From Macrostomum lignano (Eukaryota), in the NCBI GenBank assembly GCA_002269645.1, contig NIVC01004095.1, positions 1 to 51,098 on the forward strand: a DNA stretch of 51,098 nucleotides. Reading direction: 5' to 3'. Made by a program: the position numbers and the translations under genes. This document shows, in pieces, positions 3,963-49,181 of this stretch. Each line of letters opens with the position of its first letter. Position 1 is the stretch's first letter. The notes under the pieces were generated by a model. That model saw nothing but the letters and a program-made list of their open reading frames with translations, searched no databases and was not told the DNA's origin.

Positions 3963-4691
3963 GCTCCACTGAAATTTTGCCATTTTTCGCGCATTCACCT
4001 ACCTGCGTTTGAATCTGGCTGTAGCCTTTGCCAAGTAAAACAAAACTTGCACGTGGCATATCTGTCGATCTGTATTTCAGCACAAATCTGCTAATACGTT
4101 ATATTTAGGCTATATAATTATTAGCAATTTCAGAGTGAAGTTTCGGGTATTTGTTTTATTGAATACCTCGTAATACCTAGGTGCTAATTAAGCTGAATAC
4201 TCGCCTTGCAGAACTTATTAGAAGACGTCTGTATCCAATGCGGTGACGCAAACTTTTGCCCTAAGACTGTACCTGCTAAATTTGTCTAGAAGCTGTGAGT
4301 GGGGCGCGTTTGCGCTTTTCAAACCTCGATAACGACTTGGAAATAATGCGTAACAGCTTCAGTCTTCTAGTTTCTTCTTCTGTATTTACCTTCCCCTTCC
4401 GTAGAGGTGAATTGAAAACTGTGAATATTGCAAACTGTGGCAAATATTTACTAATCTTGGAAACAATTGAAGCCAAATCTAAATTTTTATGATAAGGATA
4501 AAGATGTATGAATTGACTTTAAATTCGCATTATAATCTAATCTCAATTATTTATTTTATCAGTTAGGCTAAACAAGGAGCTGAGATCCAGGATGCTTGCA
4601 GCATGAGCTATTATATAGAAAATATCGATTCATATTTTATATCACTCTAAGTTTTGACGCCAAATGAGAATGAATTGAAACGTAGAATTGC

Positions 4692-4820
<129 letters not shown>

Positions 4821-5569
4821 TTAATAAGAGAAAAGAAGCAGACTGAAAAGAAGTACGTAAAAGTCGCTACAAATTTTAAGAATTTACACACAGATCACAA
4901 TTTCTGAAATTTGTTTATTCAATTTAGCAGTCGAATGCGATGCCATTTGTTAAATAACAGAAGGACAATAAACTACGGGATGTTAAAACAAACAAAAGTG
5001 TTAATCATGTAGGCATTGTGAACGCGAAATCGGTTAATCTATCACATACTACTACATGAAATTATTAAATAACAAAGGAAATGTATTAAAAATCCCTTTG
5101 CAGCCAATAACAACTTAAATGTAGTATGAATATAGTACAAAACTATAAACGCAATTGCTGAGAACAGCAAGTCATGGCGATATTGTTAAATAACAGATAA
5201 ATTTATTCTTTTCCGGGGGAAATTAAAACAAAAAAGGAAACAATTGACGGATACAATTGTTATAATTAACTGTATGGAATTAAAAGCTTAAATACGTGTG
5301 ACATAATTAAAACTTGGCAACCATTATGTCTCTCAGCCGTTAAGGACTCGATCACAGCAGGTCTTTGCAGCAATCGCACTGGCTAGAGATACTGAAGGTA
5401 TCCTGCAGTGTTTCCCAATGGATCTGGAAGGTGAAAGTTGATGAGAAAGAATGTGATCGTTTTTTGTCATCTTTTATTCGCAAAATAAGTCATGTCATTT
5501 AGATTCACCGATTAGCTAAGACACATACTCAACGAATCATTGATTTACTAAATCACTAAAAAGGTCACT

Positions 5570-16568: not shown

Positions 16569-22954
<6,386 letters not shown>

Positions 22955-28302: not shown

Positions 28303-29667
28303 CTTCACCCCTCCCACTCTCAACCTCACCCCTCCCACTCTCAACCTCACCCCTCCCACTCTCAACCTCACCCCTCCCACTCTCAACCTCACCCCTCCCA
28401 CTCTCAACCTCACCCCTCCCACTCTCAATCTCAACCCTCTCACTCTCAATCTCACCCCTCTCACTCTCAACCTCACCCCTCCCACTCTCAATCTCACCCC
28501 TCTCACTCTCAATCTCACCCCTCTCACTCTCAATCTCACCCCTCTCACTCTCAATCTCACCCCTCCCACTCTCAACCTCACCCCTCCCACTCTCAACCTC
28601 ACCCCTCCCACTCTCAACCTCACCCCTCCCACTCTCAATTTCGCCCTCTTTATTTTCAGTCTCTCCTCTTTCCTTCTCATCTAACCCCTCTCTTTCAATC
28701 TCACCCTCTCATTCTCCCTCTCTTCTCTTTTACTGTCAATCTCACCCCTCAATCTCAATCTCACCCCTCTCACTCTCAATCTCACCCCTCTCACTCTCAA
28801 TCTCACCCCTCAATCTCAATCTCACCCCCTCAATCTCAATCTCACCCCCTCAATCTCAATCGCACCCTCTCAATCTCAATCTCATCCCCTCAATCTCAAT
28901 CGCACCCTCTCAATCTCAATCTCATCCCCTCAATCTCAATCTCACCCCTCTCACTCTCAAGCTCACCCCTCTCACTCTCAATCTCACCCCTCTCACTCTC
29001 AATCTCACCCCCTCAATCTCAATCGCACCCTCTCAATCTCAATCTCACCCCCTCAATCTCAATCTCACCCCTCTCACTCTCAATCTCACCCCTCTCACTC
29101 TCAATCTCACACCCTCAATCTCAATCTCACCCCTCTCAATCTCAATCTCACCTCTCTCACTCTCAACCTCACCCCTCTCACTCTCAATCCACACCCTCAA
29201 TCTCAATCTCACCCCTCTCAATCTCAATCTCACCTCTCTCACTCTCAACCTCACCCCTCTCACTCTCAATCTCACCCCTCTCACTCTCAATCTCACCCCT
29301 CAATCTCAATCGCACCCTCTCAATCTCAATCTCACCCCCTCAATCTCAATCGCACCCTCTCAATCTCAATCTCATCCCCTCAATCTCAATCTCACCCCTC
29401 TCACTCTCAATCTCACCCCTCTCACTCTCAATCTCACACCCTCAATCTCAATCTCACCCCTCTCACTCTCAATCTCACCCCTCTCACTCTCAATCTCACC
29501 CCCTCAATCTCAATCGCACCCTCTCAATCTCAATCTCACCCCCTCAATCTCAATCTCACCCCTCTCACTCTCAATCTCACCCCTCTCACTCTCAATCTCA
29601 CACCCTCAATCTCAATCTCACCCCTCTCAATCTCAATCTCACCTCTCTCACTCTCAACCTCACCCAC
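28303..29667. repeat. Large 21-bp C/T-rich minisatellite (CACCCCTCYCACTCTCAAYCT) with variant units
   Basis: Directly visible. It accounts for ORFs 28293..29681, 28249..28680 and 29045..29296. Confidence 0.97.
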
Positions 29668-30176
29668 TTCTGCACTCTTAATCCCAGCTTTTAGTTTACC
29701 ACAGTAAACGAAATTTGTTACAAATGATCCGCCGATATGCTGTAAAAATGTTAAAATTAGTTTGAAGAAGGAGCCTTAACTTTCCTGTTCAATTAATTAG
29801 TTTCTCCTAGTCCATTTAAATAGTTAGTTAAGTCCATTAAATGATTTTTGCTGATCTATGATCCTGTACGTGTATATGTTTTATAAGAAGGCGCTAGTTC
29901 TGCTTAAAGTGTTTAGCCTAAAGGGGCCGGGGCGATATCTAACCTCCACATGGCCAGATGTTTTTGCGATTGGTTGGATAGTGGGGGGGGGCTTGCAGCC
30001 GGCAGAAAGACAGGACCTGCTGCTTGGGTAGAGACAAGAAACCTATGCAAGCGCACCCACAGTAACAACTCTTCCACGAAAGCCCCATTTGCAGACAGCT
30101 GCGCGCTGACTGAGGATTTCAGTTTGCTTCGCAAAAGCTCAGGCGAAATTTGTGGCCTCATTTTAAAGTCCGCTCA

Positions 30177-30630
30177 GAGTGCCTGCGGCGCCAAAATGAG
30201 TGCCTGCGGCGCTAAAATGAGTGCCTGCGGAGCTAAAATGAGTGCCTGCGGCGCTAAAATGAGTGCCTGTGGCGCTAAAATGAGTGCCTGCAGCGCTAAA
30301 ATGAGTGCCTGCGGCGCTAAAATGAGTGCCTGCAGAGCTAAAATGAGTGCCTGCGGCGCTAAAATGAGTGGTGTCTGCGGAGCGCTAAAATGAGTGCCTG
30401 CGGCGACAAAATGAGTGCCTGCAGCGCTAAAATGAGTGCCTGCGGCGCTAAAATGAGTGCCTGCAGGTGTGCCAAAATGAGTGGCTGCAGCGCTAAAATG
30501 AGTGCCTGCGGCGCTAAAATGAGGGCTGATAACACGATTCCTAAAATAATGGAACTGTAGGAATTTAGTCATGTACATGTTGAAGTCTTGGCTTTGTCCC
30601 CCCACCATAAAATCCATGGCGACGCCCCTG
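30177..30630. mobile_element. Partial hAT MITE (right end) carrying the 21-bp GCCTGCGGCGCTAAAATGAGT array
   Basis: The array and tail (...TACATG...GCTTTGTCCC...CATAAAATCCATGGCGACGCCCCTG) match the element at 34466-35150. Left TIR not found. Confidence 0.8.
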
Positions 30631-32254
30631 GGCACGCTTGTACGAGCATGTGCTGAGGAGTCAGTAGAATGGGCAGGATCGCCTCAACACTGGTGCCCGG
30701 GTACCCGCAGCCCTCCTGCAAATTATGTTTATTATTAATTATGCCGAAAGATGAATACGTAAAAAATCACTGCATTCTGTCAGCTACATCAACTTATTTC
30801 GACACTAGCTACTCACCGATTTCTTAGAAAGGTAACGACTCGTTGCTTAACACGCAAAAATCAATTGATTAAGAATTAAAACTCGACCAAGTTGAAAAAC
30901 AACAAGAACAAAAACATGTTCGCAATAAATTTAGTAAAATGTGCTTTTTGAAGCTCCACTTGTTTAATAAAGATTAATAGAGGGGATTTTACAGTTTTTT
31001 AACCTCTTAAGCTCCGCCTGAAATCCAAAGCACACTGAAAAAACCCACTGGCTGCAGATCGGCCATAGACAATTCTAACCCCAGATTCACTCATCCCGAG
31101 CCTACCGGATAGGACCATGTACATGTAGACAAAGTCGAAGACTCTGATCAAATCTGTGTTCTTGAGTCAATGGTGGAGAGCAAAAAAGAGAAAGAAGTCT
31201 CTTTCGTGAAGCTGAACTGTCACTCTGTTTTCTTTACTAAATTTTATCTGCTCATTGCAGAAAGAACTCATTGCTGCTCCGACTTCGTAGCTTCGTTTGT
31301 TTGTGCCTCTTCTGTTTTCCTAACTACAGCAAATAATTGTTTATTTTAGGTGACATTACATATTTAATATGCAAGAAATGCTTTTCCTAGGACCCAGTCT
31401 AAATTTTCTGCTTTTCTATCTCATCGACTCTGATCGCCCTGAGTCGACGACTCTTTTTGTCCTCTGATGGCTGCTCTGCAGCCATATCGGGGATGTTCAG
31501 GGCGACTTAAAATCGGGCCATAGACGGCAGAAGTCGAGCAAATGTCAAAGGGAATATCGGAGGTTAACAAATGGCTGCTCTGCAGCAACTGGGTTCGATA
31601 GGGTTAAAGTGTTCTCTGCTGATTAGTTTTCAAGAAGAAAAACCGCAATAAAAATTTTCCTTTCTTCTTTTGTCTAATTTCTTTCTAAATTCCTTTGCAT
31701 AAAGAGCTGCATTTGCTTCAGCCATGCATTTTCGCTTCTTCTCGCTAAGCGTTTCTTCCTCTGCCTCTTCTTTCCCGGATCTGCTTTTTAGTTTTTCAGC
31801 CCCGCTAAGACCGGACAAGGGTCACAGGTTGGCAGGCTCCAGTCGCGAGAGAGACAGCTTTCTTTCTAGGCGACAGAGCTGCAGCCCAGAAATCGGGGAC
31901 AAGAAAAGGTGCAGACAGCGTTGCAGCATGACGCAGTTCCGTGCAGGCCCGGTCAACTTGTAATGAAGACAAAAAATTTCTGGACCGAGGGAGTGTTAAG
32001 AAAAGTAAATTTCTTAGTCTTTGAAGTTGACGAGTGTATTTTTTCTGGCTTGAAAGTATTTTTCAATGTACATTACATGCAGTGCACTAGGCTTTTTAAC
32101 GTACATGCATTATCTTACTAAACTGTACATAACACTGCGGGAAATAAGAATGATTTATGATCCTAAAAGTGTAAAGGAATGCCTTCAAGTGCCTTCGTGT
32201 TTGAAGGCTTAGAAAACGAATAAATGATTGCGCACAGATACCAATGAAGATCCA

Positions 32255-33250
32255 ACCCTCGAACAAAAGCTCCAATCCACAGAGAAGCTCCAATCCACAC
32301 ACAGAAGCTCCAATCCACAAACAGAAGCTCCAATCCACACACAGAAGCTCCAATCCACACACAAAAGCTCCAATCCACACACAGAAGCTCCAATCCACAC
32401 ACAGAAGCTCCAATACACACACAGAAGCTCCAATCCACACACAGAAGCTCCAATCCACACACAGAAGCTCCAATACACACACAGAAGCTCCAATCCACAA
32501 CAGAAGCTCCAATCCACACACAGAAGCTCCAATCCACACACAAAAGCTCCAATCCACACACAGAAGCTCCAATCCACACACAGAAGCTCCAATCCACACA
32601 CAGAAGCTCCAATCCACACACAGAAGCTCCAATACACAAACAGAAGCTCCAATCCACAAACAGAAGCTCCAATCCACAAACAGAAGCTCCAATCCACAAC
32701 AGAAGCTCTAATCCACAAACAGAAGCTCCAATCCACAAACAGAAGCTCCAATCCACAAACAGAAGCTCCAATCCACAAACAGAAGCTCCAATCCACAAAC
32801 AGAAGCTCCAATCCACAAACAGAAGCTCCAATCCACAAACAGAAGCTCCAATCCACAAACAGAAGCTCCAATCCACAAACAGAAGCTCCAATCCACAAAC
32901 AGAAGCTCCAATCCACAAACAGAAGCTCCAATCCACAAACAGAAGCTCCAATCCACAAACAGAAGCTCCAATCCACAAACAGAAGCTCCAATCCACAAAC
33001 AGAAGCTCCAATCCACAAACAGAAGCTCCAATCCACAAACAGAAGCTCCAATCCACAAACAGAAGCTCCAATCCACAAACAGAAGCTCGAATCCACAAAC
33101 AGAAGCTCCAATCCACACACAGAAGCTCTAATGTACAACAAAAGCTCCAACCCCACAACATTCTCCAATCCACACATCCTCCAATCCACAGCATTCTCCA
33201 ACCCACACATCCTCCAATCCACAGCATTCTCCAACCCACAACATATACAC
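32255..33250. repeat. 20-bp minisatellite (CAGAAGCTCCAATCCACAMA), about 43 copies, followed by a degenerate 31-bp variant
   Basis: Directly visible. It explains all long ORFs between 32096 and 33301. Confidence 0.98.
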
Positions 33251-34465: not shown

Positions 34466-35150
34466 CAGGGGCGTCGCCACGCCCACGTCCCATAGTAAAA
34501 GCTATGGGAGACATGCCATTGCTTTGTTCCTCCCACCCACCTAGTGACCCGATTTGGAAATCAAAAATTTTGCTTCAGGGCGACAAAAAATAGCGCCTGT
34601 GGTGCCAAAATGAATGCCTGTGGTGCCAAAATGAATGCCTGCGGTGCCAAAATGAATGCCTGCGGCGCTAAAATGAGTGCCTGCGGTGCCAAAATGAATG
34701 CCTGCGGCGCTAAAATGAATGCCTGCGGTGCCAAAATGAATGCCTGCGGCGCTAAAATGAGTGCCTGCGGTGCCAAAATGAATGCCTGCGGCGCTAAAAT
34801 GAATGCCTGCGGTGCCAAAATGAATGCCTGCGGCGCTAAAATGAGTGCCTGCGGCGCTAAAATGAGTGCCTGCGGCGCTAAAATGAGTGCCTGCGGAGCT
34901 AAAATGAGTGCCTGCGGCGCTAAAATGAGTGCCTGCAGGTGTGCCAAAATGAGTGCCTGCGGCGCTAAAGTGAGTGCCTGCGGCGCTAAAATGAGTGCCT
35001 GCGGCGCCAAAATGAATGCCTGTGGCGCCAAAATGAGAACTGGCAACACTGATTCTGAAAAAATGTACATGTACGAATTTAATCATGTACTTGTACATGT
35101 AGATTTTCCGGCTTTGTCCCTTCAACATAAAATCCATGGCGACGCCCCTA
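34466..35150. mobile_element. Complete non-autonomous hAT element (685 bp) with internal 21-bp minisatellite
   Basis: TIRs CAGGGGCGTCGCCA / TGGCGACGCCCCTA. Perfect 8-bp TSD GCTGAAGC at 34458-34465 and 35151-35158. About 21 copies of GCCTGYGGYGCYAAAATGART inside. Confidence 0.92.
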
Positions 35151-39756: not shown

Positions 39757-42609
39757 ATGTCGTCGAAAACGATTCTGTCCCTGCTGCTTGCGGCATTGGT
39801 GTCCGGCTGCGTTAATCGACCTGCGTACGGCGCCGTTTGTAAGTGTTAACATGTAACCTGACTGTAGATACGAAAGTCTGATAAATAGCCTACATGTATA
39901 CACAGATGAGGATGAAGTTATAGATGCTAGGAATTAGTAGCTCATAACTGACCAGTTTCGCGTAAAAGTGACATTTGTTGGCAGAGTTTGTAGGATCAAA
40001 TAAGACCCAATATTTAAATCAGAAGAGAGAATTATCATCTAGAAGTCGAAGAGCTGCAATCTTAACCTACAAGTTAAGCGGATGCGGTTGCGGTTAGTAA
40101 AAATAGGTAAAAAATACGGCTTTTTATTTTTGATACGTTGTTAATTAGGAAAAACTTGAAACCCTAGTTGTTGTTCTAGTTGTCTTTGAGGTCAATGGAG
40201 AACTACATTTAATACAAATTAAAAGTCACTGGCAAGCAGGCGTGGTGCGAAGAAAGAATCCCAAATTCCAATTAGAGACTTTAGGTGAGATTCTAGCGCC
40301 TGTTTAGCGTCGCAAGCAAGATTTATAGGCTCTCTACGCGCACATAGTGCTTTTTTTTCTACATGATTTCTCTCCAGGGTTTTTTGACCATTTCAATTTC
40401 CAACGAGCCATTTTTGAGGAGAAACAGGCCTTCCATCTAAATGCCGGAGTGGACAGCTGCCCCCTGCTTCTCCCCGTTCCGCGGTCCCCTGCTTGCGAGT
40501 TACTGAGGGCACCCACTGAGGGCTTTAGTCCCAATGCCGTCCGGTCCCTATATGGAAGTTTTCACTGCAATGCATTGCTTTAACTTAAAAAATCTCACTT
40601 CAGACCAGCAAATTCAGCTGATTGAGTGTAGACAGAGCTCCACATTTGGTGGCGCCAAATGCGTTCGAGCGATCGATGGCAACACCAACCAGGACTATCA
40701 CGCCGGCTCGTGCACCCACACGGAGGCGCACCAGGGCTGGTGGCAGGCTCGAACTGAGCACCTTACCCACTTCAAACAGATTCGCATCTATAACAGAATG
40801 GACTGCTGCTCGGAGAGGCTTGACTACTTTTCTATCTACATCGATGGGCACCTTAGCGCTGTTTATCGAGGCGAACATTTTGCAATGAAATTTCAACGTA
40901 GACAGGATTGGTCAGGTCGTTCGAATTCAAAGTCACAGAGAATCGACATTTTCTTTGTGCGAAGTGCAAGTCCTCGGATATGCTATTAGCCTGCCTTCGA
41001 TTGGAGGTGAGATCAGATGCTACGGGTGGAAACTGAAATTGCTATTGTACATAAGGCACAGGCCGAAAAATTGGCACTAAAACATCCGATGCCTCGAGAT
41101 TGTACTAACTTACTCGTGTAAAAACCCACCTATTTCAGAACAACTGGCCTTCGACTCTTGCTCGCAGAGTTCAATTTCGTATGGTGGCGTCTGTGACCGA
41201 GCAATCGATGGCAACATCACCAGGGCTACATTCACGGTTCGTGCAGTCACACCCAAGCAGAGCGAGGCTGATGGCAGGGCCACCTAACCAAGGTTAGTGA
41301 TGTGACTCATGTCCGCATCTACAACCGACTGGACTGCTGCTTAGATCGGCTGTCGGACTTTGCCGTACTCATCGACGATAAAGAATGCGCATCGTACCGG
41401 TCAGAGCCCGACTCATTTTTCTCGATGCTGACTCTCAAGTGCCCAGGCACCGGCCAGAAAATCAAGATTGCTAATCGTAGGCCAACAAATTTGACTATGT
41501 GCGAGGATAAAGCGTTTGTAAGACACGGAAGACACATCTATGCCAGAAAGTGAGTATAAGCAATGCGCTCTAATATTATAGTAGTACCCAAAAGATTATT
41601 TGCTTTAACTAAAGTTAAGATCACATTGGAAATCTTTTCAGAAATTAATAATTTGCCCTCTTTTGCAATTTGCTGGACGCCCAAAGCGTCTGCGGATGTC
41701 TCGGCATGATGTCGGATTGTTGTATGGGATAAGCTTGACATTCTTGGCTGAGCTGCGGGCTGGTTTCGGGCATCCGGATACGTTGGGGAGGCGTTGGCGA
41801 CCATCCCGCTAACCCCTTGGTGATCACAGGCAGCTGGTGCTGTGGTGTCTCGTAGGCAGATCCGGTGGTGCCGGTGTACGCAGTGCAGTCCCCCTCCGGA
41901 GAGTCCAGGAGAGTCTGTAGCCCGTAGGTAGCGGAAGAGCTCGCGCAGAAGTTCTTGGGTCTGAAAACGTCGGGAAGGTCCGAGTTTGGGCTGAGGTAGG
42001 TAAACCTGTTCTGAGTACACGCGGAGTATTCACAGATAGAGTGCTCCGCATTCTCAACACCAGAGAGGCAAAATAGCCATTGCTCAAAGCGCAGGTATCA
42101 CGGGATAAGCTTGAATAAAAATATACTAACAATCAGTAGTTAAAGATTTAAAACCGACAATTTATACCGGTAGAAACACTGTAGATCGACGAGAACGCTG
42201 AATGAAAGAATGGGTTTCCATGGAACTTGCAGAACAGCTCAAGTTCAACAGTTGTAGTCAGAGCTCAACTGCCTCTGGTTGCGACTGCAAACGGGCCTTT
42301 GATGGCATCCGGAACCAGGACTACCACGCCGGGTCGTGCACACATACTGAGAGTGCACACAACAACTGGTGGCAGGCGCAATTACCCAAAGCTTCATTTG
42401 TATCGAAGATTCGAATCTAGTACCTCGAAGATTGCTGCTCTGACCGGCTCAAAGATTTCTCAATCAGCGTAGGTGGTCTCGAATGCGCCTTTTACCGTTC
42501 CGACGACCACTTCTCGGCTCGGACTTTCGAGTGCAACGCGTACGGCGAAGTTGTTCGTATCGATAGTCACAAAGCGGAGCCGCTGATCCTCTGCGAAGTG
42601 GAGGTGTAA
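39757..42609 (+). pseudogene. Signal peptide + three tandem F-type lectin (fucolectin) domains, disrupted
   Basis: Exon 39757-39838 encodes MSSKTILSLLLAALVSGCVNRPAYGAV (phase-1 donor T|GTAAGT). FTLD exons are 40604-41006, 41139-41517 and 42233-42609, with AIDGN / CTHT / WW / RxDCC..R / CEV motifs. Lesions: frameshift near 40890, frameshift near 41218, TGA in place of W near 41270, TAG at 42418-42420, and loss of the motif Arg in domain 3. Confidence 0.8.
41739..42101 (-). mobile_element. Short 3' fragment of a non-LTR retrotransposon in F-lectin intron 3
   Basis: Flanked by the 13-bp direct repeat GGGATAAGCTTGA (41726-41738 and 42102-42114). The minus frame GVENAEHSICEYSACTQNRFTYL resembles the C-terminal CCHC (E..EH..CEC.A) of I/R1-group ORF2. 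Confidence 0.45.
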
Positions 42610-43274: not shown

Positions 43275-43303
43275 GTTTCTGTCTGTCTGTCTGTCTGTCT
43301 GCC

Positions 43304-43367
<64 letters not shown>

Positions 43368-43370
43368 GTG

Positions 43371-43430
<60 letters not shown>
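43275..43430. repeat. (GTCT)n microsatellite
   Basis: Directly visible. Confidence 0.98.
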
Positions 43431-43918: not shown

Positions 43919-44820
43919 ATGCAGCAACTCCTCACAGCCGCATTCGCTCTGCTGGCGACGATCTGCTCGACAGTCACAGGCGATGACCCCGGCAGCTGCG
44001 CCAACCAGAAGCTGTTCTCTTTAGCCGAGCCCCACAGCCTGACGGTGCCGCAGTCCTTCAAGTCCGTGCAGGCAGTTGGCAGCGAGCTGCAGTGCTCTCT
44101 GCAGTGCAGGGCCCAGTCCGGTGTCTGCTTCGGCTTCTACTGGCAAGAGGCGAGTCTGTCATGCCAGCTGTTCAGCATCGCTGCGTTCTTCAGCAAGTCG
44201 CTGTGGCAGCCGAGCGCCAAGCCGAGAGCCAAGCCGGTCGATGTCTTCACAAAGCTGTTCGACTGTGAGTTTTGCACTTATTGAATTCAACGGTATAAAT
44301 TATTTGAAGGAGGTAATTTTGCCTCCTAATTTAAGCCTCAATAATTACTGAGACTTAAAGGCTCTTAGTGAAATGCTTTTCCTTCGCTTTGGTTGCTGCA
44401 GTACCGACAGAAGCAGTTTTGACTGTTCAAAACTGCAGTCAGATCTCTACTTTTGCGAGTGCTGTCTGCGGATTAGCAATCGATGGCAACACGAATCAGA
44501 ACTTTCACGGAGGCTCCTGCGCCCACACCGAAGGAGGCAAATCCCAATGGTGGCAGGCCGACCTCGCTCAGCAGTTCCGCATCAAGGCAGTCCGCATCTT
44601 CAACAGACAGGACTGCTGCGCTGAGAGGCTCAACAACTTCACCCTGCTGGTCGATGATGTCGAGTGTGCCAGGGTAGACGGAGCTCAGAGCTTCTCCATC
44701 AAGACAGTCAGCTGCCTCGGCTACGGCAGTCGGGTTCGCCTCGTCAGTCGCTTGCGTGGTGTGGTGTTCAGCCTGTGCGAAGTTGAGCTGCTTGGCTTCC
44801 CCGTCTCTGTGCTGCCTTAG
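43919..44820 (+). CDS. Secreted PAN/apple domain + F-type lectin domain protein (254 aa), intact
   Basis: Exon 1 is 43919-44264 (signal peptide; QCSLQC..VCFGFYW..SCQLF apple pattern; donor T|GTGAGT). Exon 2 is 44402-44820 (acceptor CTGCAG|). 765 nt in frame. Complete fucose-binding signature AIDGN, CAHT, NRQDCCAER, LCEV. Confidence 0.88.
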
Positions 44821-45648: not shown

Positions 45649-45752
45649 TATTTTATATGAAATTCGATTGCCTATTTTACGGGGGCATCCCATCTGATTG
45701 ATAGACATATAGGCTTAGACCATTTTATTCCGACCATAGACAAATAAATAAA

Positions 45753-46825
45753 GGGGATGTCAACTTAAGCACCAGAATGGAGCCCGAAGTTCAGCTCCAG
45801 ACCAAACCGACTGCAATCGATAACTTGTCGGCCCAGACGACTGGAATCGCCGAGAACTCCCATCCGGCTCCCTTCCTTGGGGTCCCAGGGGATAAAGGGG
45901 ATAAAATGGGGATCTCATGTCAACTTAAGGCTCTGGAATGGAGCCCGAAGTTCAGCTCCGGACCAAACCGACTGAAATCGATAACTTGTCGGCCCAGACG
46001 ACTAGAATCGCCGAGACATCCCATCCGGCTCCCTTCCTTGGGGTCCCAGGGATAAAGGGGATAAAATGGGGATCTCATGTCAACTTAAGGCTCTGGAATG
46101 GAGCCCGAAGTTCAGCTCCGGACCAAACCGACTGCAATCGATAACTTGTCGGCCCAGACGACTAGAATCGCCGAGACATCTCATCCGGCTCCCTTCCTTG
46201 GGGTCCCAGGGGATAAAGGGGATAAAATGGGGATCTCATGTCAACTTAAGGCTCTGGAATGGAGCCCGAAGTTCAGCTCCGGACCAAACCGACTGAAATC
46301 GATAACTTGTCGGCCCAGACGACTAGAATCGCCGAGACATCCCATCCGGCTCTCTTCCTTGGGGTCCCAGGGGATAAAGGGGATAAAATGGGGATCTCAT
46401 GTCAACTTAAGGCTCTGGAATGGAGCCCGAAGTTCAGCTCCGGACCAAACCGACTGCAATCGATAACTTGTCGGCCCAGACGACTAGAATCGCCGAGACA
46501 TCCCATCCGGCTCCCTTCCTTGGGGTCCCAGGAGATAAAGGGGATAAAATGGGGATCTCATGTCAACTTAAGGCTCTGGAATGGAGCCCGAAGTTCAGCT
46601 CCGGACCAAACCGACTGCAATCGATAACTTGTCGGCCCAGACGACTAGAATCGCCGAGACATCCCATCCGGCTCCCTTCCTTGGGGTCCCAGGGGATAAA
46701 GGGGATAAAATGGGGATCTCATGTCAACTTAAGGCTCTGGAATGGAGCCCGAATTTCAGCTCCGGACCAAACCGACTGCAATCGATAACTTGTCGGCCCA
46801 GACGACTAGAATCGCCGAGACATCC
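45753..46825 (+). repeat. 161-bp tandem array, left arm (about 6.7 units)
   Basis: ATGGAGCCCGAA recurs at 45777, 45938, 46098, 46259, 46420, 46581 and 46742. Confidence 0.97.
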
Positions 46826-47820
46826 GCTGTGCCACTATGTTCCGCTATGTCATTGAGTGCTGCTTTGCTGCCATTAAGCAGGACAAATGTGTTAACGAGA
46901 GGCACAAACCGTATCAGTGGCTGCCGTCAGCCGGCTTCAGTGAGCCCAGCCGATTAGACGTTGTTATCGAGACCTCGATGGCAAAGTACAACCGGGCGCA
47001 TCCAGGTTTTGAATCATTTAAACAGCTGCCACCGTCATGGACAGGGCTATCGTTGTTCGAATTCGGGCAGAATTTCATGCGCCGAGTGCTCTTGTCCAAC
47101 GAACTGGACGAAATTGAGCAGCTGCACTTCAACTGTGATCTGAAGCGTGTCCCCCTGCTAACACAAGGGCATGGATTGCTGTCAACCCGCTGGATCCAAA
47201 AAGCTCGGGTTCCCCCGAATTCACACAGTGAATTTGTCAGAGGTTTTGGTGGGTCCGTATCAACTAAATCAAGCCGATTATTACATTCAAAACATTCGTG
47301 TCAAGGAGGTTCTCGGTAGCTACGAAGGTGACTCCTGGAGAGACTTTGAGTTACACATCCGAGCCGCCGGGAGTATTGGAAGTTTCGGCAAGAGACGCCG
47401 CTAGAAAACTGGAGCAACCGATTCGGTCGGTGGCATCCGTCTTGATTTTTCTAGCTGTCGTTTTCTCGCGCCATAATTCGAAATCCTACCGCGTGATTCT
47501 TAGAGTGTGTGACAGCAGCGGACAATCGCTTTGGTTTTAGAGATCCAGGATTGCAACTTCTTCATGGCTACTACTCATCAGCAAAAGCTGGAAGTAGGAA
47601 TGCAGGCCGCCATTGTCATGTAATGGCAGTGCTCAGACTCCTGGGCTGCTACGCTTACCACCAAGATAGCTATCGAAGGTCTGGTGCTAGCCTTCGCTTT
47701 GTTGATTCCCTCTTCCACGCCGTCTTGTTGCCAGACTTTATGCCAGAGAAAATGCTTTACCACAGCAGCGAAAGCCTACTGAGCAACTGTCTAGCGGCCA
47801 GCGAGAGGAGTTTCAGTCAG
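46826..47820 (+). pseudogene. Decayed C-terminal part of a DDE_Tnp_4-type transposase with SWIM-like zinc finger
   Basis: RYVIECCFAAIKQ resembles the third catalytic motif (R..VER..G.IKQ). LVGPYQLNQADYYIQ, SRHNSKSYRV and HGYYSSAKAGSRNAGRHCHVMAVLRLLG match the pattern GxYQLKQAxSY...SRH...GWYCxCKAGARxxGCCAHIASVLWYLG. Multiple frameshifts and stops. Confidence 0.7.
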
Positions 47821-49075
47821 CCCAAGGAAGGGAGCCGGATGGGATGTCTCGGCGATTCTAGTCGTCTGGGCCGACAAGTTATCGATTGCAGTCGGTTTGG
47901 TCCGGAGCTGAACTTCGGGCTCCATTCCAGAGCCTTAAGTTGACATGAGATCCCCATTTTATCCCCTTTATCCCCTGGGACCCCAAGGAAGGGAGCCGGA
48001 TGGGATGTCTCGGCGATTCTAGTCGTCTGGGCCGACAAGTTATCGATTGCAGTCGGTTTGGTCCGGAGCTGAACTTCGGGCTCCATTCCAGAGCCTTAAG
48101 TTGACATGAGATCCCCATTTTATCCCCTTTATCCCCTGGGACCCCAAGGAAGGGAGCCGGATGGGATGTCTCGGCGATTCTAGTCGTCTGGGCCGACAAG
48201 TTATCGATTGCAGTCGGTTTGGTCCGGAGCTGAACTTCGGGCTCCATTCCAGAGCCTTAAGTTGACATGAGATCCCCATTTTATCCCCTTCATCCCTTGG
48301 GACCCCAAGAAAGGGAGCCGGATGGGATGTCTCGGCGATTCTAGTCGTCTGGGCCGACAAGTTATCGATTGCAGTCGGTTTGGTCCGGAGCTGAAATTCG
48401 GGCTCCATTCCAGAGCCTTAAGTTGACATGAGATCCCCATTTTATCCCCTTTATCCTCTGGGACCCCAAGGAAGGGAGCCGGATGGGATGTCTCGGCGAT
48501 TCTAGTCGTCTGGGCCGACAAGTTATCGATTGCAGTCGGTTTGGTCCGGAGCTGAACTTCGGGCTCCATTCCAGAGCCTTAAGTTGACATGAGATCCCAT
48601 TTTATCCCCTTTATCCCCTGGGACCCCAAGGAAGGGAGCCGGATGGGATGTCTCGGCGATTCTAGTCGTCTGGGCCGACAAGTTATCGATTGCAGTCGGT
48701 TTGGTCCGGAGCTGAACTTCGGGCTCCATTCCAGAGCCTTAAGTTGACATGAGATCCCCATTTTATCCCCTTTATCCCCTGGGACCCCAAGGAAGGGAGC
48801 CGGATGGGATGTCTCGGCGATTCTAGTCGTCTGGGCCGACAAGTTATCGATTTCAGTCGGTTTGGTCCGGAGCTGAAATTCGGGCTCCATTCCAGAGCCT
48901 TAAGTTGACATGAGATCCCCATTTTATCCCCTTTATCCCCTGGGACCCCAAGGAAGGGAGCCGGATGGGATGTCTCGGCGATTCTAGTCGTCTGGGCCGA
49001 CAAGTTATCGATTGCAGTCGGTTTGGTCCGGAACTGAACTTCGGGCTCCATTCTGATGCTTAAGTTGACATCCCC
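47821..49075 (-). repeat. 161-bp tandem array, right arm (about 7.8 units, inverted)
   Basis: Reverse-complement copies of the left-arm unit; minus-strand ORF starts at 48086, 48247, 48408, 48569, 48729, 48890 and 49051. Confidence 0.97.
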
Positions 49076-49181
49076 TTTCTCACAAAGATACAGTCACGAA
49101 GCAGCAGTCAGTCAGCGGTGGCAAAACATAACAGCCGAATTTAAATTCGCTTTTTCTTCGAACTAGAATCAACAATACAAT

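Follow-up and report, generated by a model that had tools for sequence, protein, structure and literature searches.

A probable foldback derivative of a PHIS transposon with a Spy-type insertion signature in Macrostomum lignano

Results and discussion

What kind of mobile element has arms that are inverted tandem arrays of its own terminus, and to which group of transposons does it belong? This question is raised by a locus in the window, the whole stretch of 51,098 nucleotides of Macrostomum lignano DNA that was analyzed. The only named database match is an M. lignano protein, and a wnt gene in the window confirms that the host is a metazoan, M. lignano or a very close relative. The current work suggests, with a probability of about three in four, that the locus is a 3,323-bp non-autonomous foldback-type derivative of a PHIS cut-and-paste DNA transposon with the insertion signature of the Spy group.

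Structure of the element

The element spans positions 45753-49075 of the window, where GGGG opens it at 45753 and CCCC closes it at 49075. Its ends are inverted repeats beginning with GGGGATGTCAAC, located between host AAA and TTT. The features are as follows.

45750..45752, no strand: AAA, left half of the presumed AAATTT target site; host DNA, not duplicated
45753..45789, plus strand: left terminus, GGGGATGTCAACTTAAGCACCAGAATGGAGCCCGAAG, the ancestral form without the CTCAT insertion; resembles the 5' end of the related element L005
45753..46825, plus strand: left arm, array L1-L7 of about 6.7 units (161 bp each), truncated at unit position 105 in the final one
46826..47820, plus strand: centre, the 3' third of a PHIS-type transposase gene, non-functional (phmmer, tblastn, family alignment)
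46843..46857, plus strand: RYVIE, the R(3)E motif with the third catalytic residue, sole part of the DDE triad left (family alignment)
47171..47353, plus strand: first out-of-frame block with its two bounding frameshifts; encodes VGPYQLNQADYYIQNIRVKEVLGSYEGDSWRDFE in the shifted frame
47446..47515 (approximate limits), plus strand: second out-of-frame block, with two more frameshifts; encodes ...LIFLAVVFSRHNSKSYRVILRV...
47575..47646, plus strand: remnant of the Cys-rich C-terminal motif, SSAKAGSRNAGRHCHVMAVLRLLG; family consensus C..CK.G.R..GCCSHV....LG
47821..49075, minus strand: right arm, inverted array R8-R1 of about 7.8 units (161 bp each), truncated at unit position 126 in the innermost one
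Outermost 37 nt of the right arm, minus strand: right terminus, GGGGATGTCAACTTAAGCATCAGAATGGAGCCCGAAG
49076..49078, no strand: TTT, right half of the presumed AAATTT target site

Tandem Repeats Finder reported a left array at 45757-46825 (period 161 bp, 6.7 copies, 97% matches, score 2033) and a right array at 47821-49071 (period 161 bp, 7.8 copies, 98% matches, score 2411). In the longest inverted pairing, 45775-46825 is matched with 47842-48892 over 1,051 nt at 98% complementarity, with a spacer of 1,016 nt. The outer ends pair at 45750-46071 and 48757-49078, and the inverted repeat formally reaches AAA/TTT (45750-49078). The arms, of 1,073 and 1,255 bp, make up 70% of the 3,323 bp, and the 995-bp middle domain is single-copy in the window. 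The 13-mer ATGTCAACTTAAG occurs 15 times in the window (7 on the plus and 8 on the minus strand), always within the element, against 0.12 occurrences expected from shuffles; the 161-bp unit was not found elsewhere in the 51 kb. An earlier sequence-only reading had described a foldback transposon with arms of its own terminal 161 bp, about 6.7 units facing about 7.8, and a potential stem of more than 1 kb. Its boundaries and both of the strings it quoted are exact, and its unit counts and stem agree with the values above.

The two strings are the terminal GGGGATGTCAACTTAAGCACCAGAATGGAGCCCGAAG and the internal GGGGATCTCATGTCAACTTAAGGCTCTGGAATGGAGCCCGAAG, both of which are found in the window; the corresponding motifs are GGGGATGTCAAC at the terminus and GGGGATCTCATGTCAAC in the internal units. 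Internal units contain a 5-bp insertion, CTCAT, between GGGGAT and GTCAAC, as well as a 7-nt variant block, and each of them also has AAAGGGGAT. The outermost units of both arms do not have CTCAT and share the form of the terminus of an outgroup element. Except for these outermost units, L1 and R1, the units deviate from the consensus at only 0-3 positions, and the variants A59 and T34 are common to both arms. Thus, the units are nearly alike within and between arms, as had been claimed; the further claim that every unit restates the terminus applies to the outermost units, but not to the internal ones with their insertion and variant block. Because internal units differ in this way, a multiplication of transposase-binding sites can only be inferred: the internal units are probably not cleavage sites, and may, by analogy, bind transposase.

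The transposase remnant and its relatives

The centre corresponds to the C-terminal third of a transposase; it starts at the RxxxE motif, includes the C-terminus, and ends with about 100 bp of 3' sequence. By tblastn it aligned with residues 362-560 of P0003, 655-979 of P0018 (1,016 aa), and 699-1011 of P0008. Both catalytic aspartates and the DNA-binding region (zinc finger, HTH) are deleted, and the retained part contains at least four frameshifts and two out-of-frame blocks; the element is therefore unable to move by itself. A decayed transposase of 1 kb had been proposed for this region. A remnant with lesions is indeed present, but it is only the last third and not a lesion-riddled full-length gene. 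The window's own ORF pieces gave no Pfam matches because the centre is too degraded and does not have the DDE core. The SSAKAGSR / SKAGSR form of the Cys-rich motif also appears in the closer relatives L007 and L005.

A phmmer search of 1.84 billion proteins with the centre returned 14 matches, including P0003, P0004, P0005, and P0008. The longer relatives range from 560 aa (truncated) to 1,075 aa and carry zf-C2H2, HTH_Tnp_4, and DDE_Tnp_4 in a single ORF; at full length, about 1,000 aa, the layout is C2H2, HTH_Tnp_4, DDE, and a Cys-rich C-terminal domain. DDE_Tnp_4 was matched by P0012 at 32.4 bits (cut-off 24.8) and more weakly by P0011, P0018, and P0003, and both HTH_Tnp_4 and zf-C2H2 were matched by P0003 and P0014. 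The closest relative bearing an N-terminus (L006, 74% nucleotide identity) matches HTH_Tnp_4 in translation at 32 bits (cut-off 27).

The PHIS signature is D..K..D..D..P..R(3)E (PMC4122938). The family alignment reads D...GDGN...FDxGY...RxxxE, and a PHIS-type D(55)D(37-38)D...R(3)E is found in the relatives, with 40-50 additional residues ahead of R(3)E. Five full-length relatives show a catalytic spacing of D(93-94)D(80-102)E; when the GDGN aspartate of P0003 is taken as the second D, the spacing becomes D(55)D(118)E. Membership of the transposase in PHIS, which had been suggested earlier, is upheld by the DDE_Tnp_4 and HTH_Tnp_4 matches of the relatives and by the Spy-type AAA/TTT flanks without duplication.

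Word-index protein searches with the family alignment and with P0012 returned the queries only and no named eukaryotic homologues. For the distant relatives on metagenome contigs L001-L004, L008, and L009, a search for TIRs at either end gave no convincing candidates; these contigs are probably incomplete. Repeats of at least 90 bp are present at the 5' end of one distant relative, L003. The start of L007, at a nucleotide divergence of 29%, coincides exactly with the array/centre deletion junction. An intron boundary was considered as the cause and rejected, given that the genomic contigs L005 and L006 run straight through that point.

Copies at other loci

Parts of the composite can be recognized in gene models at other M. 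lignano loci. The predicted protein P0001 spans both array/centre junctions, with the arms in opposite orientation, and the gene model P0002 spans the left junction; the other exons of both are absent from the window. No record was returned when the centre ORF, the array ORF, and P0001 were looked up by exact sequence, and none of the sequences retrieved is an autonomous copy from the same genome. Sharing of the junctions with gene models at other loci implies that the whole composite was copied together and did not arise in the assembly. The two copies elsewhere are about 97-100% identical to the centre at the protein level, comparable to the similarity among units; thus, the lesions came first, and an element that was already defective has recently been amplified. 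Recent homogenisation or mobilisation in trans had been proposed to reconcile the uniform units with the damaged transposase. Mobilisation in trans fits these data, but homogenisation is not needed when the copies elsewhere are equally alike.

Insertion site and comparison with Spy

The flanks read ...ATAAATAAA/GGGGATG...CATCCCC/TTTCTCAC, and no direct repeat of any length lies beside the element, whether AAA/TTT is assigned to the TIR or to the host. Spy elements insert between AAA and TTT without duplication (PMC4122938), for which experimental proof has been given (PMC11304231). The chance of AAA on the left together with TTT on the right is about 1e-3 at the composition of the window. In L005, the closest relative with a 5' end (transposase 44% identical), the sequence is AAA/GAGGATGTCAACTTAGG, and its first 17 nt match those of the element at 15/17. 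The evidence for AAA/TTT consists of this half copy and the full copy in the window. Target-site duplications of the other PHIS groups (TWA; 2 bp; ANT; CWG; C/TNA/G), as defined for PIF/Harbinger, ISL2EU, Pangu, and NuwaI/II (PMC4482050), were not found beside the element under any definition of its ends.

Functional Spy termini have GGG, GAG, or GGA right after AAA, as seen in primers (PMC11304231); cgSpy reads AAA/GGGCCTGG and cvSpy AAA/GAGCCAAG, and GGG after AAA is also found here. Compared with the Spy consensus GGANNNNG, the termini of the element (GGGGATGT) and of L005 (GAGGATGT) agree at positions 1-2 (GG/GA) and differ at A3 and G8. This consensus is loose, since active cgSpy itself starts with GGG and cvSpy with GAG. 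A metagenome scan with the terminal motif GRGGATGTCAACTTARGC gave 68 loci, most of which belong to a prokaryotic IS6-family element (DDE_Tnp_IS240) with the same first 18 nt; these loci were dropped as evidence because their flanks are not AAA and their transposase is unrelated.

Further likenesses to Spy (Han et al. 2014, PMC4122938; cgSpy, PMC11304231) are the single ORF (in the relatives), which encodes an HTH at the N-terminus and a DDE domain akin to those of IS5, Harbinger, and ISL2EU, and genomic copies that are mostly deletion derivatives; Spy elements have no second ORF of the Myb/SANT or YqaJ type. Spy TIRs are also highly variable in length and sometimes long, from 5 or 9 to 1,474 bp (PMC4122938) and 467 bp in active cgSpy (PMC11304231). 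However, the long Spy TIRs have 'no apparent subrepeat structure' (PMC4122938), whereas the arms here are pure 161-bp tandem arrays; tandem-array arms are thus new for Spy. Most Spy transposases have about 700 aa, in contrast to about 1,000-1,075 aa, a C2H2 finger, and a long Cys-rich C-terminal domain in the present relatives. Published Spy spacing is D(79-80)D(44-62)E (PMC4122938), from which the D(93-94)D(80-102)E of the relatives departs; the residues counted by those authors are uncertain, and the mismatch is a warning rather than an exclusion. Reported Spy hosts are arthropods, cnidarians, molluscs, and one rotifer (PMC4122938); Platyhelminthes are not among them.

Alternative explanations

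A PHIS-related but non-Spy origin, from ISL2EU or an undescribed lineage, was weighed against the Spy-type assignment. AAA/TTT would then be the end of the TIR or a coincidence, and a target-site duplication would have been lost in a later rearrangement of a sort common in foldback elements, for example recombination between two copies. The inverted repeat does formally include AAA/TTT, and AAA could belong to the element given AAAGGGGAT in every internal unit; the DDE spacing and protein length of the relatives and the host range of Spy reported so far point the same way. However, duplication is absent under either end definition, none of the TWA, 2-bp, ANT, CWG, and C/TNA/G signatures fits, and the independent relative L005 has AAA immediately ahead of the conserved terminus. 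The relatives, moreover, resemble Spy in having one long ORF that encodes an HTH at its N-terminus, and no Pfam match is on record for the other genes called on their contigs (L001, L008, and L009). This origin appears unlikely. A broader version, in which an undescribed PHIS lineage is combined with an old, long-lived foldback derivative with a fixed deletion junction, is quite doubtful. That lineage may be characterized by proteins of about 1,000 aa with C2H2, HTH, DDE with an expanded D-to-E spacer, and the Cys-rich C-terminal domain. Its blunt AAA/TTT integration would be common with Spy or independently acquired, its hosts would be found among flatworms as well as marine zooplankton, and tandem repeats close to the terminus would recur in it (compare L003). 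The start of L007 at the same junction might then point to a role, in cis or as a truncated protein, for the C-terminal part that was kept.

Inverted repeats of tandem units longer than 1 kb are difficult to assemble, and such a structure might be imitated by a long read that is palindromic or chimeric, or by a satellite that was collapsed or misjoined. Palindromes from missing adapters, however, are perfect and have no spacer; the present arms differ in length (6.7 and 7.8 units), agree at 98% instead of 100%, and end at unit positions 105 and 126, with 995 bp of unique homologous coding remnant between them. Considering also that the independently predicted P0001 crosses both junctions at a different locus, with opposite arm orientation, an assembly artefact is hardly credible. 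The genome is extremely tandem-repeat-rich, judging by the window, and an older 161-bp satellite could have been inversely duplicated around a dead transposase fragment without ever transposing as a whole. Such an immobile local feature is very improbable: the sharp ends match a terminus conserved in a related element, the ancestral-type units are specifically the outermost ones in both arms, the array/centre junctions are identical at two or more other loci, and the unit is confined to the element within the window.

Comparison with foldback elements

Foldback elements include FB, Galileo (P superfamily), and Tetris in Drosophila, and Tm1 (Mutator/Foldback) in Meloidogyne. The M. lignano element shares with them very long inverted tandem-repeat arms that form most of the element, variable copy number of the repeats, a short middle domain, and copies that are mostly non-autonomous and mobilised in trans. 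Structurally, it is a foldback element. In the phylogenetic sense, which refers to a P/THAP or MULE transposase and a 7-10-bp target-site duplication, it is not: FB, Galileo, Tetris, and Tm1 belong to the P or Mutator superfamily and have such duplications, whereas the remnant here is PHIS-type and no duplication is present. Several transposase-binding sites have been demonstrated in the long TIRs of Galileo, and the TIR repeats of Tetris (TIR-220) can seed satellite arrays.

Foldback architecture had been thought new for the PHIS group, but it is already found in MtPH-A6-4, a PIF/Harbinger element of Medicago truncatula (Grzebelus et al. 2007, PMC2213677) with inverted subterminal tandem repeats, whose copy-number change was ascribed to abortive gap repair. 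Its 60-bp unit derives from a triplicated 12-bp motif and lies inside a separate 14-bp TIR, with a 3-bp duplication; in M. lignano, the arrays consist of 161-bp units, of which the outermost forms the terminus, and the target site is not duplicated. No description of the element, or of PHIS or foldback elements in Macrostomum, was found in the literature searched. The design is known from other transposon groups, and the element is a new example rather than a new kind.

Proposed mechanism and significance

Under the preferred reading, a Spy-type foldback derivative, full-length relatives that encode proteins of about 1,000 aa would have provided, in trans, the transposase for recent copying of the element. 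Cleavage would occur at the outermost units, where the ancestral terminus is kept, followed by blunt integration into AAATTT. Internal units may bind transposase without being cleaved, as subterminal repeats do elsewhere. The arrays could gain and lose units through unequal exchange, slippage during replication, or abortive gap repair, and exchange between the arms may keep them alike, as the occurrence of A59 and T34 in both suggests. Inverted arms of more than 1 kb would tend to form hairpins or cruciforms, the usual source of foldback instability. Precedents for this mechanism are available (PMC4079207, PMC2213677).

If the Spy-type reading is true, the sole eukaryotic cut-and-paste group without target-site duplications is extended to flatworms, and this is the first Spy-like element whose long arms were visibly built by tandem amplification of the terminus. 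It would offer a concrete route for the unexplained 'TIR expansion' of the Spy literature. The natural series of terminus repeats would also provide a test set for how a Spy transposase reads its ends, which is of value because long TIRs affect the activity of cgSpy, a gene-transfer tool under development.

For Macrostomum genomics, the significance is more modest: the element may well seed 161-bp satellite DNA, and its inverted repeat is likely to be fragile. Repeat-borne ORFs have already given rise to the chimeric gene models P0001 and P0002.

Structure of the foldback element

The element begins with GGGG at 45753 and ends with CCCC at 49075 (3,323 bp), and these coordinates, proposed earlier in a sequence-only reading, proved exact to the base. 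Its arms were resolved by Tandem Repeats Finder as follows:

45757-46825: left array of 161-bp units, 6.7 copies, 97% matches
47821-49071: right array of 161-bp units, 7.8 copies, 98% matches

The two arrays are mutually inverted. Without gaps they pair over at most 1,051 nt (98% complementarity), leaving 1,016 nt between the arms, and the outermost pairing joins 45750-46071 to 48757-49078. The inverted arrays of about 6.7 and 7.8 units noticed from the sequence are thus confirmed in full by repeat and pairing searches. The 13-mer ATGTCAACTTAAG was found 15 times in the 51-kb window, always inside the element (0.12 expected from shuffles).

The arms can be cut into units L1-L7 and R1-R8, in which L1 and R1 are outermost and the internal units are 0-3 positions off the consensus. 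Taken whole, the outermost unit of each arm shares 94-96% identity with the internal units, indicating that the arrays multiply the terminal 161 bp and not merely a 40-nt motif; the view that the arms are built from the element's own terminus is therefore borne out. The stronger claim, that every unit restates the terminus, holds for this overall identity but not in detail: all 13 internal units carry a CTCAT between GGGGAT and GTCAAC that is absent in L1 and R1, and all 13 read GGCTCTGG where L1 and R1 read GCA(C/T)CAG. The terminus of contig L005, which encodes the related protein P0003, is closer to the terminal version of the motif than to the internal version, so the outermost units preserve the ancestral end, which is presumably functional, and the amplified ones represent a derived form. 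Cleavage might take place at the outer ends only, with which the ancestral form of the outermost units would fit.

Every unit closes with GGGGATAAAGGGGATAAAATGGGGAT, in which GGGGAT occurs three times, once after AAA, as it does at the genuine terminus. Two derived variants are common to both arms, A at unit position 59 (L2, L4, R2) and T at position 34 (L7, R2, R5), which implies that the arms exchanged sequence or stem from one array. The inner junctions are asymmetrical, with the arms stopping at different unit positions, 105 on the left and 126 on the right.

The transposase remnant and its relatives

No Pfam match was obtained for the window's own ORF pieces, and a first protein search gave a single match, a Macrostomum lignano UniRef entry with 85-92% identity to two stretches of the centre. 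When the frame-stitched translation of the centre was compared exhaustively by phmmer with 1.84 billion representative proteins, 14 proteins were found, including P0003 (560 aa, truncated; 44% identity across 174 residues) and P0008, P0014, and P0018 (1,016-1,075 aa); the informative matches come from metagenome or sequencing-run assemblies. The family alignment reveals a common layout: a C2H2 finger at the N-terminus is followed by a low-complexity acidic stretch, an HTH and a DDE core (D ... GDGN ... FDxGY ... RxxxE), and then by a long conserved C-terminal domain whose end reads C..CK.G.R..GCCSHV....LG. DDE_Tnp_4 matches P0012 with 32.4 bits (cut-off 24.8) and, below threshold, P0011, P0018, and P0003; HTH_Tnp_4 is below threshold on P0003 and P0014, and reaches 32 bits (cut-off 27) on the conceptual translation of contig L006, the closest relative retaining the N-terminal half (74% nucleotide identity to the window centre). 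These Pfam matches of relatives support an IS5/Harbinger-type transposase.

In tblastn, the centre maps only to the C-terminal third of its relatives (residues 362-560 of P0003, 655-979 of P0018, and 699-1011 of P0008). Homology opens at the first codons past the left arm (R-C-A-T-M-F-R-Y-V-I-E), which lie at the R(3)E motif; the window copy has thus lost by deletion its zinc finger and HTH along with the two catalytic aspartates. Two blocks, at about 47171-47353 and 47446-47515, are homologous in a shifted frame only, which requires at least four frameshifting indels. No active enzyme can be encoded by the element. What had been read as a decayed transposase is indeed a frameshifted remnant, but of a 5'-truncated C-terminal third and not of a complete gene.

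Other copies and mobility

Two Macrostomum lignano gene models contain the same junctions. P0001 (334 aa) crosses both the left junction (...RIAETS|AVPLCSAM...) and the right junction (...RSFSQ|PKEGSRMGCLG...), with the second arm inverted, and P0002 (2,393 aa) spans 1.5 units plus the left junction. The other exons of both models are missing from the window, which offers 45 kb upstream and 2 kb downstream, so both are other loci, and the composite of arm, centre, and arm was copied whole three times or more. These gene models argue against an assembly artefact, which had been a worry from the outset, as do the unequal arms, 98% and not 100% identical, the asymmetry of the inner junctions, and the unique sequence between the arms.

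Where aligned, the other copies show about 97-100% protein identity to the window centre, the same likeness as that of the units among themselves, indicating that the frameshifts are older than the recent multiplication of an element that was by then defective. Of the two processes offered for this uniformity, mobilisation in trans is sufficient, and special homogenisation of the arms need not be invoked.

The left junction may be an old common deletion breakpoint. L007, a contig of a different sequencing run that matches the centre at 71% identity across 846 bp, starts exactly at the point corresponding to 46825/46826, where L006 and L005 continue into upstream coding sequence. Because De Bruijn contigs end at branch points, this start weakly suggests the same breakpoint in the genome of L007, whose upstream sequence lies beyond the contig. 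In L007:846-1344, 3' of the transposase remnant, the translation GLRNRGLQCYANVVVQLF... resembles the Cys box of ubiquitin-specific proteases (Pfam UCH, E = 0.0095, below threshold) and may be part of a gene that was captured or lies alongside.

Insertion signature and classification

The flanks read ...ATAAATAAA|GGGGATGTC ... GACATCCCC|TTTCTCAC. The element lacks flanking direct repeats of any length, with its ends set either at GGGG/CCCC or at AAAGGGG/CCCCTTT. This excludes the target duplications of PIF/Harbinger (TWA), ISL2EU (2 bp), Pangu (ANT), NuwaI (CWG), and NuwaII (C|TNA|G) (PMC4482050), as well as the duplications of 7-10 bp made by foldback elements of the P and Mutator types (PMC4079207). 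Spy elements insert between AAA and TTT, the AAATTT target being neither duplicated nor altered (PMC4122938), a behaviour confirmed experimentally for cgSpy (PMC11304231). AAA on the left, TTT on the right, and no duplication are exactly this signature; the chance of such flanks in the window's composition is about 1e-3. L005 serves as an independent check: about 780 bp upstream of its start codon, TTAAA|GAGGATGTCAACTTAGGCCAG presents the same 17-nt end (15/17 identical), again preceded by AAA. Functional Spy termini taken from primers, AAA|GGGCCTGG and AAA|GAGCCAAG (PMC11304231), indicate that members of the group ordinarily start with GGG or GAG.

Three features weigh against a simple assignment to Spy. 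Its published terminal consensus, GGANNNNG, is matched in part only. Catalytic spacing does not match, as the relatives read D(93-94)D(80-102)E and Spy is published as D(79-80)D(44-62)E. The relatives also exceed the usual length of Spy transposases (about 700 aa; 963 aa in Hydra). With Spy compared through its published descriptions, we call the element Spy-like by insertion signature and PHIS by protein homology. The initial PHIS guess is thereby supported, through DDE_Tnp_4 and HTH_Tnp_4 on the relatives, and sharpened.

Comparison with known foldback elements

The element belongs to a known class, that of DNA transposon derivatives with foldback structure. FB, Galileo, Tetris, and Tm1 likewise combine long tandem-repeat arms with a short central domain, and most of their copies are defective; the long TIRs of Galileo contain multiple transposase-binding sites, and the TIR repeats of Tetris gave rise to a satellite (PMC4079207). 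The sequence-only reading named no such design in the PHIS group, but MtPH-A6-4 of Medicago is a precedent for inverted subterminal tandem repeats (PMC2213677). Long TIRs of Spy, up to 1,474 bp, are explicitly said to be without subrepeat structure (PMC4122938), and Spy has recently been restated as limited to three phyla. In the literature, with Repbase and Dfam outside the search, no published description of this family was found. New is the combination of Spy-type duplication-free insertion, a terminus that is itself the first repeat unit, and a flatworm host. The main interest lies in the extension of Spy-type elements to Platyhelminthes and in tandem amplification as a route to long Spy TIRs. 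The internal units might act as extra transposase-binding sites, and the arrays might seed satellites, give rise to small RNAs, or promote rearrangements.

Observations in related contigs and in the window

About 40 peat-metagenome contigs (Ga018777x; among L010-L077, e.g. L011:395-991) contain one multi-copy prokaryotic insertion sequence beginning exactly with GAGGATGTCAACTTAAGC, the same 18 nt as the flatworm terminus. The identical position of the motif, at the boundary of the one element as of the other, is striking. The 194-aa ORF of the insertion sequence matches DDE_Tnp_IS240 (IS6 family, 1.3e-14), AAA is absent from the flanks, and we treat the likeness as a coincidence conditioned on the query motif. 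In nine unrelated prokaryotic contigs (L018, L029, L071, L027, L037, L072, L042, L050, L074), the 18-mer directly follows a GC-rich hairpin ending in ...GGCGG(G/T); this has the look of a conserved context, perhaps the end of another IS family or a post-terminator insertion hotspot.

Terminus-proximal tandem repeats may be recurrent in the transposase family. For the distant relative P0018 from marine metagenomes, L003:1-165 holds, at the 5' contig end, a 90-bp tandem repeat (at least 1.8 copies) containing GTTGTCAAC; L001:3528-4010 and 4508-4940 hold 130-200-bp direct repeats downstream of the gene, and each of the four contigs breaks in the 5' repeat.

Further features of the window are as follows:

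45777-46957 (+), 47791-49051 (-): 161-bp units with ATG and open frames
20338-20961; 40534-40989; 44368-44820: a wnt-family exon (PF00110, 1.4e-20) and two F5/8-type-C (fucolectin-like) ORFs
30177-30523, 34595-35036: two direct arrays of one 21-bp unit (GCCTGCGGCGCTAAAAT...), about 4.4 kb apart
32246-33150: 45-copy 20-bp array between the two 21-bp arrays
28305-29683: 67 copies of a 21-bp unit, extreme GC skew
22104-22503: (AGTT)100
43278-43430: (TCTG)38

Since 161 is not divisible by 3, the frames of the units rotate, producing spurious 122-aa ORFs over 2.3 units. These were incorporated in the chimeric public gene models P0001, named 'DUF3480 domain-containing protein', and P0002, which also holds THAP and PRP4 pieces. 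About 0.9 kb separates the end of the second lectin-like ORF from the element downstream of it. The wnt and lectin-like sequences, with the Macrostomum lignano match of the centre, identify the host as a metazoan, most probably M. lignano or a very close relative. The window is dense in mini- and microsatellites, and its large arrays illustrate the tandem-repeat richness of the host genome. Similar short ORFs adjoin each of the two direct 21-bp arrays, suggesting another repeat-bearing duplicated or mobile segment.
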